A DNA stretch of 32,000 bases from Wallemia ichthyophaga EXF-994. Taxonomy: Eukaryota; Fungi; Basidiomycota. Location: positions 390,001-422,000 of the forward strand of contig NW_008806276.1 of assembly GCF_000400465.1 (NCBI RefSeq). Direction: 5' to 3'. Under the pieces are notes generated by a model. The model searched no databases, was not told the origin of the DNA, and saw only the letters and a list, made by a program, of their open reading frames with translations. The number at the start of each line of letters is the position of its first letter. The first letter of the stretch is position 1. Positions 1-9,761 of this stretch are shown here, in pieces. The translations under genes were made by a program, and so were the position numbers.

Positions 1-1
1 T

Positions 2-1054
2 GAATTCGTTGGTGATGGCGAGAAAAACGATGAGGACGATGAAGAGGAGGAATCAACACTGACTGATGCCCTCATCGCACAAATTGAGTTCGCAGATATT
101 GTCTACCTCAACAACGCATCAAAGATGTCAGAAGATGCTAAGATGCACGCTGAAGGCGTTGTTAAGTCGCTCAATCACCGCGCTACAGTTGTCCAAGTCG
201 ACAACGCAGCCGTAGACGCAAAGGATGTTATCCACAGTGGTTTGTTCAACCCAGAACAATCATTCAACCCACAGTGGTTGCAATCAGTGAAAAATCCAAA
301 CGGCGGTGACTCATACACTAACAAGAACGACATTGAGTCTTTCGTTTACAGACGCAAAGTGCCTTTCCACCCAGCTCGTCTCGCAAAGCTGTTCAAGGAG
401 TCATTCCACTTTATTCAACAATCAGATGCCCAAGACGCTCAAGAAGATGAGTGGGAAGATCAAGAAGAAGAGGTCGTTGAGGATAAAGGCAAGGGTAAGG
501 CTGCTGCTATTGAAGAAGACAAAGAGGAACCAGCACAAATGGATGAAATCACTACTGAGAATATAGTTGATGCCATCGACAGAAAGCAGAAGAGTGTATT
601 CGCTTCTCTCCTCAGAGCTAAGGGTAGCTTCTGGATTGCTTCAAGAGCAGCAGTCGGTGGTGCAATTCAAGCATCAGGACCTGTGTTGAGTGCTGCTTCT
701 GGCGAGATGTGGTACACCAAGATCCCAGAAGATGAAATTTCTCAAATCAGCCCAGATGAGCAGAAGTACATTAAGGATGTTGTGTTTGATGAGAAATTCG
801 GTGACAGACGTCAAGAAATCTACATTGTCGGTGGACCAAACTTTAACAGAAACGAGGTTGAGCAAGCACTCGACAGTGCCTTGTTGACTGATGATGAGTT
901 CAACACGTATAAATCCATCTACGATAAGCAGATGGGTGTGTTTGACAAAGATGAAGAGCTCTCCAAGGCGTTTGACGGTGACTCAGAGTTTGTTCAATGG
1001 GTCGACGATCTCATCATGGCACTCCTCGACCAAGAGGAGGAGGATGAGCAGTAA
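2..1054 (+). CDS. COG0523/CobW-family (YciC-like) G3E GTPase/metallochaperone, C-terminal part; 5' truncated by the window edge
   Basis: Frame open from nt 2: QIEFADIVYLNN, then CobW_C motifs SFVYRRKVPFHPARL, LLRAKGSFWIA, FGDRRQEIYIVG, LDSALLTDDE. Confidence 0.85.
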   Translation, partial: EFVGDGEKNDEDDEEEESTLTDALIAQIEFADIVYLNNASKMSEDAKMHAEGVVKSLNHRATVVQVDNAAVDAKDVIHSGLFNPEQSFNPQWLQSVKNPNGGDSYTNKNDIESFVYRRKVPFHPARLAKLFKESFHFIQQSDAQDAQEDEWEDQEEEVVEDKGKGKAAAIEEDKEEPAQMDEITTENIVDAIDRKQKSVFASLLRAKGSFWIASRAAVGGAIQASGPVLSAASGEMWYTKIPEDEISQISPDEQKYIKDVVFDEKFGDRRQEIYIVGGPNFNRNEVEQALDSALLTDDEFNTYKSIYDKQMGVFDKDEELSKAFDGDSEFVQWVDDLIMALLDQEEEDEQ

Positions 1055-1155
1055 TTTGCAAATATCTTATACCAAACGTATCAAAAGACACAGTAATTTA
1101 ACTTTTCAAATATAGATTCAAATTTACAATATACGTCATCAGTGTAATCTTTTGA

Positions 1156-1749
1156 TTACTTGGTTTGCTTCTCTAGTGCGCTTGTGCTCCTATCTGAGAA
1201 CTCTTTGTTCAATTTCAGAAACTGTTTGAAGCGTTCATCCGAGGCGTCAGCGAGTAGCTGGAAGAGGACAGTTTCTGAAGTTGATATTCTGCCGCCCGAC
1301 TGTCTGATTTGATCAAGTGCGGTGTCTTTATGAGTAGCGTGAGAGCTGGACACGCCATCAATGATCACGTGCACGTCAAAGCCCTTAGCTATAAGCTCGA
1401 GTGAAGTTTGGAGAATGCAGATATGAGTTTCTACACCGACCAAAACGACTGAACGGATTTTATTAGTCTTGAGGGCATACAAGACGTCATCATTTACCAT
1501 CGAGAATCTCGTCTTACTGATAGGATCTGTAGTGAGGAGATGACTGTTGCTGAAATCAATTTCACTAACTGTCTTCCCCAAAGATTGTGGATTCTGTTCA
1601 GAGATCAAGACTGGTACATTTAGAAGCTTTGAGAATTGGACCATTTTATTTGAAACATTAACAACATGATCAAAATCCTTAATCACTTTAGCGAATATTC
1701 CCTGTACATCACAAACGAATAGAGCAGTTTGATTTTGGTGTAAGGACAT
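1156..1749 (-). CDS. Isochorismatase-family (ISOC/YcaC-like) hydrolase, ~197 aa
   Basis: ALFVCDVQ, EQNPQSLGKTV, KTRFSM, GVETHICILQT motifs; start taken at the ATG at 1749 (MSLHQNQTALF). Confidence 0.85.
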   Translation of the reverse strand: MSLHQNQTALFVCDVQGIFAKVIKDFDHVVNVSNKMVQFSKLLNVPVLISEQNPQSLGKTVSEIDFSNSHLLTTDPISKTRFSMVNDDVLYALKTNKIRSVVLVGVETHICILQTSLELIAKGFDVHVIIDGVSSSHATHKDTALDQIRQSGGRISTSETVLFQLLADASDERFKQFLKLNKEFSDRSTSALEKQTK

Positions 1750-1876
1750 TAGTGGTCTTTGATAAGCTGTTGGTGGTTCAGGTTGGAGTGGATGATGTTG
1801 ATTGGATGGCTGATCAAGATGCCTTGAATCACCGATGATACAAAGTGTCATATGATAATAAATCCATCTTATATCT

Positions 1877-4800
1877 TTACAAAACACAAACCAAATCTAT
1901 CCCGTTCGATCTGCGTATCTGCATGATAGCAATGAGGCTGATGGCTGTGTAAGCGTCGTCTCTTTCAAATACTCACACCCACTCTTTGAGCATTTCCTCC
2001 AATATCACAACGTTGTCCAGTATATCGGAGAGCGTGATTGGCTTGACAGCAGCATCTTGCTCTCCCTTCTCATCGTCTTCAAGTATACTGTCTCCGACTC
2101 GCTGCACGCGCTCGACGACTTTCGGTATAATCAGACACTGTTCAGTCTGCTTGTAGTGGTCATAGAAAGGCGTCGCCGGTCCATCAAATGCGCTAACCTG
2201 TCTGTGTTTCTTATTATTCTTATAAGTATTCACATTCTGCTCTGTTTGTCCCTTTTTTCCAGTGAAAAGAGCAGCGAGTGATGTAGTCGCCGAGCGCGTC
2301 TTAGGCTGTCTGATAAACTGATCCGCCTTCGCAGTGAGATTGCTGATTCCCCAGCTATTGCCTCTCTCGACGCGTCTCTCGAACTCGGTATCAATCGAAT
2401 CCTGGTATCGTCTGTGTGATAATTTGTTTATTTCCCCATATGTCTTTTTGCGTTGCTGATTGAAGCGCTTGTTGTGCAGCTGCATCACCGCTTTACCGAC
2501 CCCTTCTTCAAATTGTCGTACGAGGTCGTTCCGCTGTGCGGGTTCGTCTTTGTCGAGCAATGTCAATGCATCTTGAAGATTCTCCTTAAAGAGCATTCCT
2601 TTCCGCCTCTCCCCCAAACTGTAGTCCAGGTCTTGCGAAGAAATATTGTTGCGCGCTTGCAGCCTGTAGTCTTCTATCTGATCGACGAGTTCGGTAAGCG
2701 TTTGGAGGATCATGGGTGGTGAGTTTGGTGTTTTCTCAACTGCGCTTTTGAGATCATCTGCATACGGATCGTCTTCATCTCTCCACCATTGCGTCATGAA
2801 GCCCTCCAACGAACGACGTGGATTCGATGCGAGCGCTGCCAACGTCCCCGAAAGCGCAATGTTGGTTTCTGGTGACTGCGTGAAAAAGTTGCGAAGGTTT
2901 TTCACTGTCAACTTGAGCAATCTGTCATTGGTGTCGAGCTTGTGTTGGAATTGCAATTCATCATCACGCACATCTCCCCTACTTCCTAGCTTGAATTGCG
3001 GGTGTGACATGATAAGAGCCTGTGCATCATCTAAATACCTCTCATAGCCAGAAGAGAGCATTTCTTTAGTGGTTTGTACATCAATCGACCCCACTAGCCC
3101 GAGATAGCTTGTCAACTCATCGTCATCCGCTTCAACATTGCGCATTGGCGGGGGTATAGGAAACACATTCTCGTTCTTGCTCTCGCTCTTACTCCCGCTC
3201 TCACCCTCACTCTCTTCTAGCTTGCGGTAATGGTCGTTGTCCTTCATGAGCATGTGTATCCTGTGGAAATAGGGGAATGCAGTGGCGTCTTTGTTGGGTA
3301 TAATGCTGACCATCTCCTTGAGACATACATCATCATATGCGTATATTAAGTAGCTGAACAGTTTCATTGCAGCTACGCCTGTTGCACTATTATTCGACTT
3401 GAGATTAATGCTGATGAGATCTTTCAACGTGAATCTTCCGTACGAAGAAACGTAATTGGTGTTTTTAAAATTTGCCGCGTTTTCATTTTGGAGGAGGACG
3501 AGAGCGGTGCTTCTACGTCTTTCATGTTTCTTTGGCTTGGTGTTGGTTTTATAGGAAGTGCTTTCGGTGCTGTTAGTGGGAGTATTTTCGGTGCTGCTGG
3601 TGGTATCATTGAGCATGCTGTCATCTTCTGCAAAGAGGTATTGCAGCAACGTATTAGCGAGTGGATCGCCGCTCTTCACACACTGTAGCATGACTTGGAG
3701 ATACGTTATTACAGCCACGGCCGAGTAGTCGATCGACGAGCACTCGAGTATGGAGGGGTAGAGAACATTAGTGAAAAAATTGACTCTGACAGCGCGCAAG
3801 ACATTCTCTGCAACAGCTCCACCATATTTGGTACCGCTCTTCAAACCACGTTTCGTGATATCTGCAGTGAATTCGAACACACTAATGAAGACTGACAACT
3901 GATTCTGGAAAGCAATGCTGGTGGAAAGCTCTACATTTTCTACCAAACCCGATCTGTTGGACAGGTGCACATGCGACCTGTCTTCATCTCTGGGATCCGT
4001 CGGTATCACAGCGAGATTGCTGGGTAGGATACCATATACAGCACCCAACCCAGCAGCTAGCACTTGAGCTAGATCACCATCGACTATGAATTCAGCTACG
4101 GCTGCTCGTATGTCTGTTGCTGCATCTTTGGTGATAGCATCTCCATCGTAGATGTCTTCCGAGGTGCTCACTTCGAAGAGAATCAAGATGGCAGCACGCG
4201 CCAAATCTCCCGTACGCCCCTCCCTGTGTACCCAGCGTAGGAGATAAGTGAAAATTAGGAATTCAGCTGCGTGTTTTGTTAGGGGTGAAACAAAACTATA
4301 TAGAAAAAGACGCACAGTCAGATTTCGTCGAGACAGCTCGCGATGTGATAGTATTGGTGGATGCGAGAGATTCAGGTCTATCGCTGTGTTCTGAGTCTGC
4401 TCTGCTCCTCGTTGGGTATCTAATCCACGACCTGTCCAAGAAGAAGATGTGAAGGAGTGAGGGAGATGACTTGATTTTGTTGCAAAGAATACAGAGAAGA
4501 TCAACCACTATAAATTGGTTAGCCTGGATTTGAACCGAGAGCCCTAGCTCACAATGTTCTTCATATTGAGATGGCTGAGAAGTACCAGCAGTGCTCGCGG
4601 CGCCCTTGAGCGTCGTTGAGCGTGGAGAAGGCAAGTCATCGCCGGTGCATATTTTGAGGAGGTGTACGAGTGGCTTGTGTACAGGAGCCTGTACGAAAAA
4701 GTGAGACTGCATAGTGACACAAAGGTTAGACACGGCCTTGAGAACTTCGGTTTTAATCCCAAGAGGTCTATCGGATGCAGATAAGAATACGAGCTTAGAT

Positions 4801-5217
4801 AATATATCTAAAAGCGCGGGTAAGTGGGGGATAGTTGTGCGTAGATGTTGATACATACCTTGTGACAGAAACCAGTCGAGAGCAGGAGGAGTTTCTTCAA
4901 TGTCTTCATAGCGACCACTTTCCAATACGAGAGTGTCTACAATTCTTGATAATCGCTTTGGTACGTCTGTAGCCTGTATACCACGCAGAAGCTGTCGTTC
5001 GTCTGGGGTTGTGAGGGTGTCCTGGGAATATCAGCTACATGTGGCTAAAATTGAGCTGCAAACCTTGACGATATTCCAGTTCGAATCTAAATCTGATAAT
5101 ACTTGTTGCTGTGTGCGGTCTGAGTGGGGACAGATAGTGGGATAAGCAGCCACCCACAACTGATCTACCAGCTCGTTCGCTACTCGGAATACTCAGCAGA
5201 TTCGTGAAAAATTCCAT
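1877..5217 (-). CDS. FAM160/FHIP (RAI16-like, FTS-Hook-interacting) protein, multi-exon
   Basis: Motifs DRPLGIKTEVL, VHKPLVHLL, FLIFTYLLRWVHREGRTGDLARAA, LDNVVILEEMLKDLIAIMQIRR. Inferred introns 5022-5063, 4808-4858, 4508-4552, 4267-4315, a 45-nt intron near 1934-1978, and one more near 5120-5170 (boundaries uncertain). Confidence 0.8.
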
Positions 5218-5250
5218 TGCGCTGTGATCGTCCCTCCGAGAGTAACGCTC

Positions 5251-6241
5251 ATGCCTTTCTCGCTTCATTCACATTCAGGCCAATTTTGTAGACATGCCAA
5301 AGGCAGCTTAGATGATATCGCACTCTCTGCGATTGATAAGCAGTTCTCTCTCTTTGGATTCTCGGAACATGCGCCACGATACAGACGCCAGGATCTTTAT
5401 CCCGAGGAGGTGGGTCCTCTGTACAGTCTAAATACCCAGTCTAACCTCTGCCCAGAGTGACATGAATCCTCAAGATACATCAACTGTCTTCTCCGAATAC
5501 GTAATTGAGGCACACAAATTAAAGAATGTCTATAAAACTCAAATTGAGCTACTCGTAGGGCTTGAGACTGACTACATCACAGACATCGACCTGGACAATA
5601 CACGTCTTCTCATTCACAACTACAGCGACTCAGACAATCCAATCGAGTACTTGGTCGGTTCAGTCCATCATGTCCTTGAAACTCCTATCGATTTTGACTC
5701 AGAAACATTCTACAAGGCCTTACAAAAGGCTGGATCGCGTCAGGCGTTGTATGTGGAGTACTACACGCGCCTACTCCATCTCGTCAAGACGCTCGAGCCA
5801 GAAGTTATCGGTCACATAGATCTCATACGTCTTTACGAGCCGCACATCAATCTATGTGAGTATGAAGAAGCTTGGAAGCTTATCGACGCGATTGTCAAAC
5901 ATGCAGCCCAATATGGTGGTCTTATTGAAATAAATGCTGCTGCTATCAGGAAGGGTTGGCCCACTCCCTACCCCGCCTCTGACATACTCTATCTCGTAAA
6001 AACTCACGGTGCCAGGTTGACGCTCTCAGATGATACGCACACGCCCGAGAATGTCGGTCTCAATTACTGGCGCGTATTTGAGTACCTCAAGTCGCACGAT
6101 ATAAGAGATCTCTACTACTTGCAAAGATGTGAAAAGAGTGCTCCTGGTGCTATGTCGTGCGGCAGGACTGTAGTGAAAAAGTATGATGGCGTTTGGTCAA
6201 AGGATAATTTTTGGAAAACGTGCAATCCAAGTTGGAGGTGA
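5251..6241 (+). CDS. HIS2: Histidinol-phosphatase, PHP family; join(5251..5409,5456..6241), 314 aa
   Basis: HSHSGQFCRHA, SEHAPRYR, LYPEE, YLVGSVHHV, GHIDLIR, EINAAAIRKG, LSDDTH; 46-nt GTGGGT..CTAAC..CAG intron. Confidence 0.92.
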
Positions 6242-6260
6242 TGTCAATTATGCATTCTAT

Positions 6261-6960
6261 CTATACCATACACGCCGATATCTTGCAAACTTGGTCTGCT
6301 GATGCGAGTGCGTTAGCAGTAACTGAGGTGTATGCGTTTACGCTGGCTTGAGTAGAAGAACAATCCTGGACAAGTAGCTTCTCTGTAGCCTTATCATCAG
6401 CCTCCTCAAGTGCATCTATGAGATCGTGCATGTGAACGCTCTGCAGCGCACACAAAATTGCATAAAAAGCGGCAGGCACGATTATTTGAAGTATGATCTC
6501 AATAATAGCACCGTTACTATAACATTTGCATACAGTAGTGATACAGACGGAATGAGAAAAGACACCTATTAAGACAGCTAACGGTGGGAATGATAAGAAA
6601 CGCCATAGGTGTTTAGTGTCGTCTGTCTTTTGTTTTTAGAAGGTCTTTGAGGACGGTAAACACTTATTTGTTCCAGGTAAATTTCGAAGTAACCGATCTC
6701 TGCACCAGACTGATTTGATGATAAATATGATAACGCAAACGCCCAAAACTCACATCGTAATCAAAGAAATTATTCTCTTTTGGATCGGAATAGGCCTTGT
6801 AGTTCCAAATTCTGTAAAGGGTATAGATAATGGCAATCAGAGTTCCGTAGTGAGTGACATTTTTCATTGATCCAGAATACAAAATTTTCTCACTAACCTC
6901 TGCGTCCTCGTTGGAGATCTATTCTGAGCCATTTGTAGTACTGCATCGGTGATTGTGGGG
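6261..6960 (-). pseudogene. Array copy A: degenerate paralog of unknown ~4-TM family
   Basis: Aligns to copy B (YSGSMKNVTHYGTLIAIIY; FYAILCALQSV; KISACMV*). Intron 6710-6753 at the same phase-0 position as in B. Frameshifts near 6885 and in the A5 run at 6633-6637. Possible internal ATG at 6867. Confidence 0.65.
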
Positions 6961-7269
6961 TTAAAGAGAGCTCAGAGCCACCGCGTCATAGTTTAGAAGC
7001 CGAAGAAGGAGTTCAATGTATGTGTGCCATATAAATGATGATTGTTCAATTTAAGAATATAAACAACGTGTATTATATCTATACCATACAACCAGATATT
7101 TTGCGAAGTGACTGAGCTGATGAGACAGGATTTGAGACGAGTGTGTTAGCAGTGGGTGGGGTGTAGCAATTTGAGCTGGGTTGAATGTCAAGAGGCTTCT
7201 CCGCGATCTTCTCGCTCAGACCTCCCTCAGCATCGTTAAAGGCTTTATCAGTAAGCTCTTGACAGCGTA
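6870..7269. repeat. Direct repeat copy 1 (400 bp, ~96% identical to 8912-9309)
   Basis: Manual alignment: 15 substitutions, 2 single-base indels; 7027-7204 identical to 9067-9244. Confidence 0.95.
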
Positions 7270-7747
7270 TTGATTGCAGCGCGGTGAGAAGTGAATAAAG
7301 TGGATAAAACAAAAGTGAATGAAGTATGATCTCAGTGAGAGCACCTTTACCGTCGTTTTTGAAGGTATAAGTGTTTAAACAGGCGTGTAGAAACACAGAT
7401 AACGAAATTAATTCCGATTCTCCTGCTCTTGGTGGATCCTTTAGAGAAAAGATGAGATAGCCTGACTTCTCAATTATACACGGTAAGTAAGCAAATGATA
7501 AGACAAACTAATTCGCTTCAGCTATTGTCTCTGGATTTACACACCAACTCACAGACAGTCCTAATTCAGGTTCAGAATAGAACAAACTGATCACTCTATG
7601 AAGGAAGTATGAAAGGGAAATTAGGCTCCCGCAGTACGTAACAGTATCTAATGATCCACTGTAAACTCGCCTCAATAGCCTCTGCGTCATAGTCACAGAC
7701 CTATTCTGAATCATGTGCATTACCTTATCGATGATGATGGTGGACAT
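7079..7747 (-). CDS. Array copy B: intact uncharacterised ~4-TM membrane protein, join(7079..7507,7553..7747), 207 aa
   Basis: 45-nt GTGAGT..GCTGAA..TAG intron joins two listed ORFs in frame with no stops; four hydrophobic segments, polar tail ending KISGCMV*. Confidence 0.75.
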
Positions 7748-7871
7748 GAAAGAGCACGAGCACCAGCTTCATAGTTTAGAAGTAAAGAAGACTCCAATGT
7801 ATGTTTGCCCTCTGATGGTTATTCTGTAGTCGCAACAAATAAACAACATACATTATGTCTATATATCATAT

Positions 7872-9000
7872 CTATACCATACAACCAGATATCTTGCCAA
7901 GTGATGGAGTTGATGAGATGGGGTTTGAAACGAGCGTGTTAGCAGTGACTGGGGTATCTGCATTTGAGTTGAATTGATTATTCTGATGACATGAGCAAGC
8001 TACGTTTTTCTTCTTTAACCTCCTCGGCCAAACTTGTCTTAGCTTTGCAGTGCTCGATTTCAATGAGCGCATCAAAGAGGTCTCGATGCTCCACGCTTTG
8101 AAGCGTGCGCAGAAGTGCATAAAAAGTGACGTGAGTATTTGAGTCGGCGTTTGTTTTAGTATGGGAAGCGCGTGTACTGTTTAAGTCAAAGTTTGCACGA
8201 GTACGCGAATAACGTTTGCTGTTTGAGTCTGCGTTTGGTTGAGCTTGACTGTTCAAAAGACATTTACAAGCAACGGGCTTCTCTGCAACCTTCTTGTTCG
8301 ACCTTTTATCTGTTCCATCCTCCTTTTCAATTAATTTTGATATGTGGAAATCGTGATAGTAGACGCTCTTCAGCGCACGCAGAGGCGCGTAAAGAGCACC
8401 AGGAACGATAAATTCTAATATGAGGGGTTCCCAAATCGAAAAATTTAGCCATCTCTTGCTTTGGAGAAAGAGAGCATAATCAATGACAGTCATCGAGATT
8501 TTTAACGTTACTAGTGTAGAGTAGGCAACGTAAAGTTCTGTGTAGCTATCATCCCATTGTGTGAGACTTAGAGAACTTGAGCAGTAGAGTTGATCGATCA
8601 AAATGGCAAGGTATGAGATGATAAGTTTGTTCTTATTCGTGTGAGATGATGCATTTAGCAATGAGAGAGACATAATTCACAGCACGAGTAGAGAACAATA
8701 CGTCCTCAAAATCATGACGAAATTGAGACAGTTTAGTTTTAAAATGAAGCTGTTGGAAAATGAGCTCAGCTATATTCTTTACAGTAATCCAAATAACAAA
8801 CACCCTGAACAAGCAGTATAATATGGCTGTTTCGATGGGCGATTAGGTATCATGAATTTTCCTCATTTGTCCTACCAAGTATGCTCCCGAAGTGGGTGAA
8901 ACTTTCTAGTAATCCAGAATACAGAATTTTTTCACTAACCTCTGCGTCCTCGTTGGAGATCTATTCTAAGCCATTTGCAGTACTACATCGGTGATTGTGG
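7872..9000 (-). pseudogene. Array copy C: longer paralog with duplicated C-terminal module; no evident in-frame start
   Basis: Introns 8827-8875 and 8632-8701 restore alignment to A/B (GSILAILYCLFRV; NKLIISYLAILIDQL). Frameshift in the A5 run at 8005-8009; CAG->TAG at ~8968; ends KISGCMV*. Confidence 0.6.
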
Positions 9001-9309
9001 GGTTAAGAGAGCTCAGAGCCACTGCGTCATAGTTTAGAAGCCGAAGAAGGGTTCAATGTATATGTACCATATAAATGATGATTGTTCAATTTAAGAATAT
9101 AAACAACGTGTATTATATCTATACCATACAACCAGATATTTTGCGAAGTGACTGAGCTGATGAGACAGGATTTGAGACGAGTGTGTTAGCAGTGGGTGGG
9201 GTGTAGCAATTTGAGCTGGGTTGAATGTCAAGAGGCTTCTCCGCAATCTTCTCACTCAGACCTCCCTCAGCATCGTTGAAGGCTTTATCAGCAAGCCCTT
9301 GGTAGCGTA
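8912..9309. repeat. Direct repeat copy 2
   Basis: Matches 6870-7269 at an offset of 2040-2042 nt. Confidence 0.95.
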
Positions 9310-9761
9310 GTGTTTTCAGAGCATGAGAAGCGAGTGTAGTGAATAAAATAAAACTGAAACAATTAAGATCTCAGTAAGAGCAAATTTCCCGTCATGTTTG
9401 CAGGTATAAGTGCTAACATAGGCGAGTACAAACACAAATAACAAAACCACTTTCGGTGCTGCTACTATCCGTAGCGTTGGAGAATGGGCGAGACAGTCTA
9501 AATGCTGATCAAAAAGCGGCAATTCAGCATACGCTAATAAAATATAATTCTTTTCAGTTTTCGTCTTTGGATTTACATGTCAACTCACTTTCGACAATGT
9601 TTCTGATAATCCTCAGCTGCAAACGAGTAAAAGGTAATTACTATATAAATGCAGTAAAATATTATAATTATGCTCCCACAGTGCGTGACAGTATCCAATG
9701 ATCTACAGTAACCTCTCCTCAATAGCCTCTGCAGTATCGTCGTAAATGACATTGAGTGCAT
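9119..9761 (-). pseudogene. Array copy D: pseudogenised paralog closest to copy B
   Basis: QRLLRRGYCRSLDTVTHCGSII and TYTCKHDGKFALTEIL align to B. Acceptor AG->AT at 9544-9545, exon-1 phase mismatch, 1-nt deletion near 9323; ends KISGCMV*. Confidence 0.7.

Follow-up and report, generated by a model that had tools for sequence, protein, structure and literature searches.

The subject of this analysis is a tandem array of small membrane-protein genes in the genome of Wallemia ichthyophaga EXF-994, an obligately halophilic basidiomycete with a genome of 9.6 Mb (PMC3849046). The window analysed is a stretch of 32,000 nucleotides, in which position x corresponds to position x + 390000 of scaffold KE007226.1, the two sequences matching at 100% identity over 20.7 kb. 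Within it, four paralogous units, named A to D, are arranged head-to-tail on the minus strand between HIS2 and a conserved gene for a protein with four transmembrane (TM) segments and PPxY motifs (the 4-TM neighbour). Copy B is the only intact unit, copies A, C and D have decayed, and the locus has evolved by birth and death together with concerted evolution. The original prediction, made from the sequence, had placed four units here with stops at 6261, 7079, 7872 and 9119, and all four stops were recovered. Coordinates are collected in Table 1.

Table 1. Features of the array and of its surroundings, in window coordinates
Feature	Position	Strand	Description
RAI16-like/FHIP flanking open reading frame (ORF)	1973-4504		98-99% identical to W. 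ichthyophaga proteins
HIS2 (PHP-type histidinol phosphatase)	5224..6241	+	Convergent with the array; fixed downstream boundary in every genome examined
Copy A, pseudogene	6261..6932	-	ATG at 6932; intron 3 at 6753-6710; tail ORF 6479-6261 still open, ends KISACMV*
Conversion tract, B-tail/spacer/A-head copy	6870..7270	.	92-100% identical to 8910-9310
Copy B, sole intact unit (predicted gene)	7079..7747	-	196 amino acids (aa) from ATG at 7714, 207 aa from ATG at 7747; exon 1 to 7553, intron 7552-7508, exon 2 7507-7079; ends ...SLRKISGCMV*
Copy C, pseudogene with ancestral four-exon structure	7872..8974	-	Intron 1 8875-8827; exon 2 8826-8798; intron 2 8797-8750 (donor decayed to GTTATT); exon 3 8749-8681; intron 3 8680-8632; ends KISGCMV* at 7872
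Conversion tract, D-tail/spacer/C-head copy	8910..9310	.	Boundary varies between strains
Copy D, pseudogene	9119..9761	-	ATG at 9761; tail identical to that of B
4-TM neighbour, 293 aa	9869..10796	-	Exon 1 10796-10115; intron 10114-10069; exon 2 10068-9869

Organisation of the array

The units have in common an N-terminal QRL..YSG..VT(H/Y)xG segment, a (F/L)YxxLxxL(Q/K)S helix and a KIS(G/A)CMV* end, as had been noted before. A tblastn search of the window with the spliced orthologue of a related species matched each of the four units and no other sequence. Tandem Repeats Finder detected no repeat at the array because the units are too diverged, and an Rfam scan of the window returned zero RNA families. 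Introns in the window begin with GTGAGT and are about 45-60 nt long.

Copy B is predicted to consist of two exons separated by a 45-nt phase-0 intron (GTGAGT..TTAG). The 207-aa product first proposed is reproduced when translation begins at the upstream in-frame ATG (7747), while the ATG at 7714, which aligns with the orthologous starts, gives 196 aa. The 45-nt intron was preferred to one of 84 nt, which would give 185 aa, since the shorter intron brings back TM2 and agrees with the orthologues. Copy B is still intact in a second strain lineage, with the changes G70D and S75F and one synonymous substitution.

The three remaining units carry multiple lesions. Copy A has a +2 nt frameshift within 6890-6872, directly after QRLVRK, and its frame is broken again between TM2 and TM3, where the ancestral frame meets a stop near 6578. 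A "rescued" version of copy A, using an internal ATG at 6867 and a 127-nt intron, was rejected because it loses TM2 and because the frame of the ancestral acceptor runs into a stop. Copy C opens with ATG GCT TAG, so that codon 3 is a stop (8974-8966), has the +2 frameshift in common with A (at 8932-8914), and carries a further frameshift ahead of the tail; part of its long ORF (8673-7978) is duplicated internally, so that the FYAxLxxLQS motif occurs twice, at 8394-8365 and 8124-8095. In copy D the phases of exons 1 and 2 are mismatched across the intron (9588-9534), and TM4 is separated from the tail by a 1-nt deletion near 9323 (within 9330-9310).

These lesions are real and not sequencing or assembly errors, because the same lesions recur in independently assembled strains. 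The copy A frameshift is found in strains L002 and L003, and the copy D lesions are common to seven other strain assemblies; in two of the strains examined, L009 and L018, copy D has also lost its start codon (ATG to ACG at 9760). In strain annotations, copy C is called either as a 231-aa ORF (contigs of about 2.1 kb) or as part of a 638-aa fusion with the neighbouring gene.

The common intron position in A to D, correctly recognised in the original prediction, is that of intron 3 of an ancestral three-intron gene. Copy C keeps introns 1-3; in A, B and D only intron 3 is left, introns 1 and 2 having been removed precisely. This suggests a single intron-loss event, possibly cDNA-mediated, that preceded the later duplications. 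The surviving copy B is therefore an intron-reduced derivative, and it is the copy with the ancestral structure that has died.

Gene conversion

Self-comparison by BLAST aligned 6845-7685 with 8887-9732 at 82% identity over 852 bp, and the tail/spacer/head junctions at 6889-7184, 7671-7977 and 8932-9224 matched one another at about 70%. In this comparison and in the comparison of tracts, the heads of A and C pair with each other, as do the bodies of B and D. Given this pairing, the array has the appearance of a block of two genes that was duplicated and then overlaid by gene conversion. The earlier description as a tandem array of four thus holds for the four units and the single intact copy, but not in the sense of a plain four-fold repeat.

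The overlay is clearest in a tract of roughly 400 bp that covers the B tail, spacer and A head on one side and the D tail, spacer and C head on the other. Its core comprises 175 bp that are perfectly identical (7023-7197 versus 9063-9237), whereas B and D are only 55-80% identical outside the tract. Judged by this distribution of identity, the tract is a recent gene-conversion event. Its edge is polymorphic, with several strains carrying the B variant at 9245, 9254 and 9278. Between two strains, seven substitutions fall within 24 bp at the second FYALLRTLQS motif of copy C (8095-8135), a cluster that looks like a micro-conversion tract from another copy.

The short-read strain contigs that were retrieved all end within the roughly 400-bp tract, at window positions 7001 and 7170 and, for seven more, at 9067-9173, except one that spans the array. 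The tract, with its 175-bp repeat, explains why assemblies of the examined W. ichthyophaga strains break here again and again. The spanning contig (GCA_004918895.1) has the same four units and a total length within 3 bp.

Orthologues and variation among strains

The same syntenic slot, bounded by the 4-TM gene and the convergent HIS2, is occupied in five Wallemia-type genomes. Three of them have one unit each: Wallemia L001 (Logan SRR25399871; 226 aa, three introns of 52-54 nt), W. hederae (GCA_004918325.1, L004 7926-8776; an unannotated copy of 232 aa with four exons and the same three introns) and L006, a more distant AT-rich metagenome contig (208 aa, ending GSCIV*). A possible extra exon in L006 (ECYDNW...), resembling the neighbouring gene, is out of frame and was dismissed as chance. 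W. ichthyophaga has four units, and W. mellicola (L005 3085-8944) has five in tandem, with four introns each. Strain L020 of W. mellicola (GCA_004918795.1) is without unit u3 and thus has four, among the eight W. mellicola loci in which copies were counted.

The W. mellicola units differ in their state. On the reference haplotype, exon lengths are exactly preserved in u2-u4, as are the splice sites, and the bodies are open, while u5 is dead. The bodies of u2-u4 have ratios of non-synonymous to synonymous change (dN/dS) of 0.35-0.5 and no indels in 444 nt, and an independent premature stop in each of u2, u3 and u4 removes only the conserved tail. In each of the two array species, both conserved termini persist in just one unit, copy B or W. 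mellicola u1, across all strains seen. Tandem paralogues, dead beside intact members, variation in copy number and gene-conversion mosaicism are all found at this locus, and the rapid divergence and birth-and-death turnover initially proposed are borne out by a core identity of 20-24% between species and by copy numbers of 1, 1, 1, 4 and 5 in the five genomes.

In W. ichthyophaga, variation was compared in one full-array strain pair and in partial contigs from further strains. The two lineages differ by 0% in copy A (818 bp, L018), 0.88% in B, 1.9% in C and 2.4% in D, against 0.2-0.75% in the flanks. The intact copy B is about as invariant between strains as the flanks, and the excess variation sits in pseudogenes C and D. 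In the one pair of W. mellicola haplotypes compared in detail, the difference reaches 7.6% at u2 and 8% in the u1-u2 spacer, versus 0.3-0.4% in the flanks, with 1.25% at u1 and 0.11% at u4; the divergent u2 haplotype is a frameshifted pseudogene.

These figures bear on the suggestion, made in the original prediction, that the array is an allorecognition or non-self sensing locus. Under this reading, variable extracellular loops would form a recognition surface under diversifying or balancing selection. The very fast divergence of the core between species, the change in copy number within W. mellicola and the peak of haplotype difference centred on u2 would fit such a locus, and W. ichthyophaga does recombine (PMC6738226), which likewise counts in its favour. 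However, hyperpolymorphism is not seen in the intact copy B, nor in u1 or u4 of W. mellicola, the divergent u2 haplotype is dead, the gene is single-copy in three genomes, and the dN/dS values of the paralogue bodies are not above 1. Additionally, no HET, NACHT, STAND or other recognition domain was found in nine family members scanned against Pfam-A. The array is not invariant among strains, and allorecognition is therefore weakened rather than excluded; we consider it highly improbable.

Stress adaptation was also put forward at the outset; here this would mean adaptation to salt or low water activity, with amplification of the gene for dosage in a halophile. The array does lie in an obligate halophile and its product would be a membrane protein. 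However, with only one of the four copies alive the array brings no gain in dosage, and the family has expanded most in W. mellicola rather than in the extreme halophile; non-halophilic Wallemia species carry it as well. When the 639 genes that respond to 10% versus 30% NaCl (PMC3849046 Table S6) were searched by protein sequence, neither the 171-aa model from copy C nor the 4-TM neighbour was among them, copy B being without a gene model there and its response thus not covered. On this evidence, a role in salt adaptation is highly unlikely.

Family membership, topology and constraint

The family had been described as an unrecognised one with four helices, and our searches agree. A copy B query against 5.8 billion proteins returned a single match, the L001 orthologue, and a profile built from the window copies and that orthologue found nothing beyond itself among 1.84 billion representatives. 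A nine-sequence, genus-wide profile matched only W. mellicola hypothetical proteins and Logan fragments. No PDB chain was matched in a sequence-profile search, and when the nine family members were run through hmmscan against the whole of Pfam-A, no domain was assigned to them, and the DUP240/COS, wtf, Sur7/PalI, MARVEL and tetraspanin families were not matched at E<=1. As far as these sequence searches reach, the family is restricted to Wallemia and one Wallemia-like metagenome contig, with no relative found outside.

Hydropathy and the distribution of charge, with 5, 2, 3, 0 and 8 Lys and Arg residues in successive non-membrane segments, fit a protein with four predicted helices and both termini in the cytosol. 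AlphaFold2 placed helices where they were expected, at a confidence (pLDDT) of 41.5 with a 4-row alignment and 43.3 with a 7-row alignment.

Conservation is distributed very unevenly along the protein. Between species, the basic N-terminal motif (T+xQRLVR+xYxGPLD) is 64% identical, the four-helix core 20-24% and the acidic linker about 30%, while the last 24 residues are 96-100% identical, falling to 75% in the comparison with W. mellicola and to about 50% with L006. The neighbouring 4-TM gene is 66-81% identical in the same comparison and 63-81% identical across the named Wallemia species. In the 24 tail codons, copy B and W. hederae differ by 15 synonymous changes and 1 non-synonymous change (proportions of synonymous and non-synonymous differences, pS 0.78 and pN 0.02), so that the constraint is on the peptide and not on the DNA or on the 3' end of HIS2. 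These comparisons show that both termini are under strong purifying selection and that the core diverges very fast.

The tail has the consensus NTLVSxPISSAxSxRKISGC[M/I]V-COOH, with an RKxS kinase-type site and a Cys third from the end. In all complete copies this Cys stands at position -3 and not -4, which departs from a canonical CaaX box. The end does correspond to a C-terminal Cys-aliphatic-X (CaX) tripeptide, which reads CMV in W. ichthyophaga A-D, L001, W. hederae and W. mellicola u1, and CIV in L006.

The combination of genus restriction, fast evolution, several membrane segments, tandem copies, many pseudogenes and gene conversion recalls, by analogy only, the wtf poison-antidote (killer or meiotic-drive) family of Schizosaccharomyces pombe, whose multi-exon genes are likewise multi-TM. 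Under such a scheme, a full-length protein would act as antidote and an N-terminally truncated one as poison; copy A could in principle yield a truncated product from the ATG at 6867, and a PY-motif protein adjoins the array. However, the Wallemia locus has a fixed syntenic position and is single-copy in three genomes, both termini are under strong purifying selection, and both W. ichthyophaga lineages compared have four copies. Copy A also has its second frameshift, and neither homology to wtf proteins nor a match to the WTF family in Pfam was detected. We regard a drive element as the least credible of the readings discussed here, and extremely unlikely.

The flanking genes and the origin of the family

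HIS2 converges on the array, and its stop lies only about 20 bp from that of copy A, so that the convergent 3' ends must overlap. HIS2 also has an apparent short first exon (about 5250-5420) and an intron ahead of its 259-aa ORF.

On the other side, the 4-TM neighbour, which belongs to no Pfam family, has a PPSY motif in its N-terminal part and two further motifs, VPPY and APPY, in its C-terminal part. Judging from its length, it corresponds to J056_003160 (EOR03703.1), a 293-aa EXF-994 protein from the same scaffold. Its architecture resembles that of PY-motif adaptors of Nedd4/Rsp5 ligases (LAPTM/Bsd2 type), to which we presume it to be comparable. The array family is likewise similar to PY-motif adaptors such as LAPTM4/5 and Bsd2/NDFIP in being small, with about four TM segments and short linear motifs in its cytosolic termini, but differs from them in having no PPxY.

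It is plausible, though we hold it tentatively, that the array family descends from this neighbour as a highly diverged tandem duplicate in which the PY-motif tail was swapped for another cytosolic one, and that the two proteins act in the same pathway, for example in membrane-protein trafficking or as ubiquitin-ligase adaptors. In all five genomes the two genes are arranged head-to-tail, and in both proteins QR(L/M) is followed, some 22 residues further on, by (I/F)YC where TM1 begins. The two profiles align colinearly in hhalign across the N-terminal motif and TM1-TM2, with a score of 34.1 (P=3e-4), whereas none of 32 reversed or block-shuffled controls scored above 20.7. However, the hhalign probability is sub-threshold, at only 39%, and covers TM1-TM2 only, a region type in which membrane helices give spurious matches. 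Additionally, the two genes have zero intron positions in common, PPxY is absent from the nine family members, and the pathway of the neighbour itself is deduced from its PY motifs only. Such an origin concerns descent and pathway and is compatible with the explanation that we prefer below.

Discussion

With moderate confidence, we propose that the array encodes a Wallemia-restricted protein of 200-230 aa with four helices, maintained in a birth-and-death array and acting through conserved peptides at its cytosolic ends. The history of the locus is the part of this account that the comparisons show. Ancestrally, one four-exon copy stood between the 4-TM PPxY gene and HIS2, and unequal crossing-over has given rise to the four head-to-tail units of W. 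ichthyophaga. Copy B has stayed full-length, and pseudogenes A, C and D still exchange sequence with it by gene conversion. The mode of action is the inferred part. Both termini would face the cytosol, the membrane core would serve mainly as a weakly constrained anchor, and the protein would work through its basic N-terminal motif and, above all, its 24-residue C-terminal peptide. This peptide may be bound by a partner or may be lipid-modified on the Cys third from the end, in a shortened "CaX" box, with the RKxS kinase-type site adjacent to that Cys. Duplicates that have lost the termini would be on their way out.

A lipidated or docked cytosolic tail is our best guess from the sequence pattern; alternatively, the tail could be a docking or sorting signal. 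Like CaaX and CaX substrates, the tail has an invariant Cys near the C-terminus together with aliphatic residues, is predicted to be cytosolic and has a basic pair upstream. Unlike in CaaX substrates, the Cys is third and not fourth from the end, and the carrier is polytopic rather than a soluble GTPase-like protein. According to one report, CaX tripeptides can be farnesylated by yeast and human farnesyltransferase in reporter assays, and its authors state that native CaX substrates remain to be shown (PMC11152559).

Several points weigh against the proposal as a whole. Copy B is a predicted gene that the EXF-994 reference annotation does not call; this annotation instead places a 171-aa ORF (8493-7978) inside pseudogene C. 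The four-helix topology is drawn from hydropathy and charge distribution, with an AlphaFold pLDDT of only 41-43. The copy count is that of the 32-kb window, and further copies may lie elsewhere in the genome. The open bodies of W. mellicola u2-u4, which have no tail, indicate that the core may have a function of its own and that tail-less copies may be functional. Finally, it would be unusual for a polytopic membrane protein to be prenylated, and CMV and CIV are not among the tripeptides that the accessible text of the CaX study reports as tested (PMC11152559).

A bolder version of the proposal is that the family comprises the first natural polytopic membrane proteins with a conserved and functional three-residue CaX box (Cys-[Met/Ile]-Val-COOH) beside a site of RKxS phosphorylation. 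Once lipidated, the tail would fold back onto the membrane and serve as a regulated switch, and tandem duplicates would repeatedly have escaped from it by losing the box, through the independent premature stops of W. mellicola u2, u3 and u4. We consider this version unlikely as it stands.

Among known systems, the closest parallels are of organisation. The DUP240/COS (DUP) genes of Saccharomyces cerevisiae encode lineage-restricted small multi-pass membrane proteins in tandem arrays that undergo fast duplication, gene conversion and pseudogenisation. The Wallemia family resembles them in its tandem multi-pass arrays, its fast turnover and its conserved short cytosolic motifs. However, it has no Pfam DUP match and no similarity to them at the level of sequence or hidden Markov model, and its gene occupies a fixed interstitial syntenic site, is single-copy in most species and has a conserved Cys-aliphatic-Val end. 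With Sur7/PalI, MARVEL (Nce102) and tetraspanin (Pls1) proteins, the family has in common four predicted helices and small size, but its loops are without their conserved Cys patterns, in line with the Pfam result given above.

A taxonomically restricted gene that duplicates and decays in place is an ordinary phenomenon in fungal genomes. The protein family itself is undescribed, being without a Pfam family, a structure or literature. Its recognition corrects the reference annotation, in which the intact copy B is uncalled while a fragment of pseudogene C is called, and adds an orthologue that is missing from that of W. hederae. The locus, in a genome that ranks among the most compact of basidiomycetes, also offers a clean, datable case of intron loss, gene conversion and pseudogenisation. 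For the family, the combination of a near-freely evolving core with a frozen 24-residue tail makes it a good candidate to be either a native substrate of CaX lipidation or the carrier of a new C-terminal docking motif.

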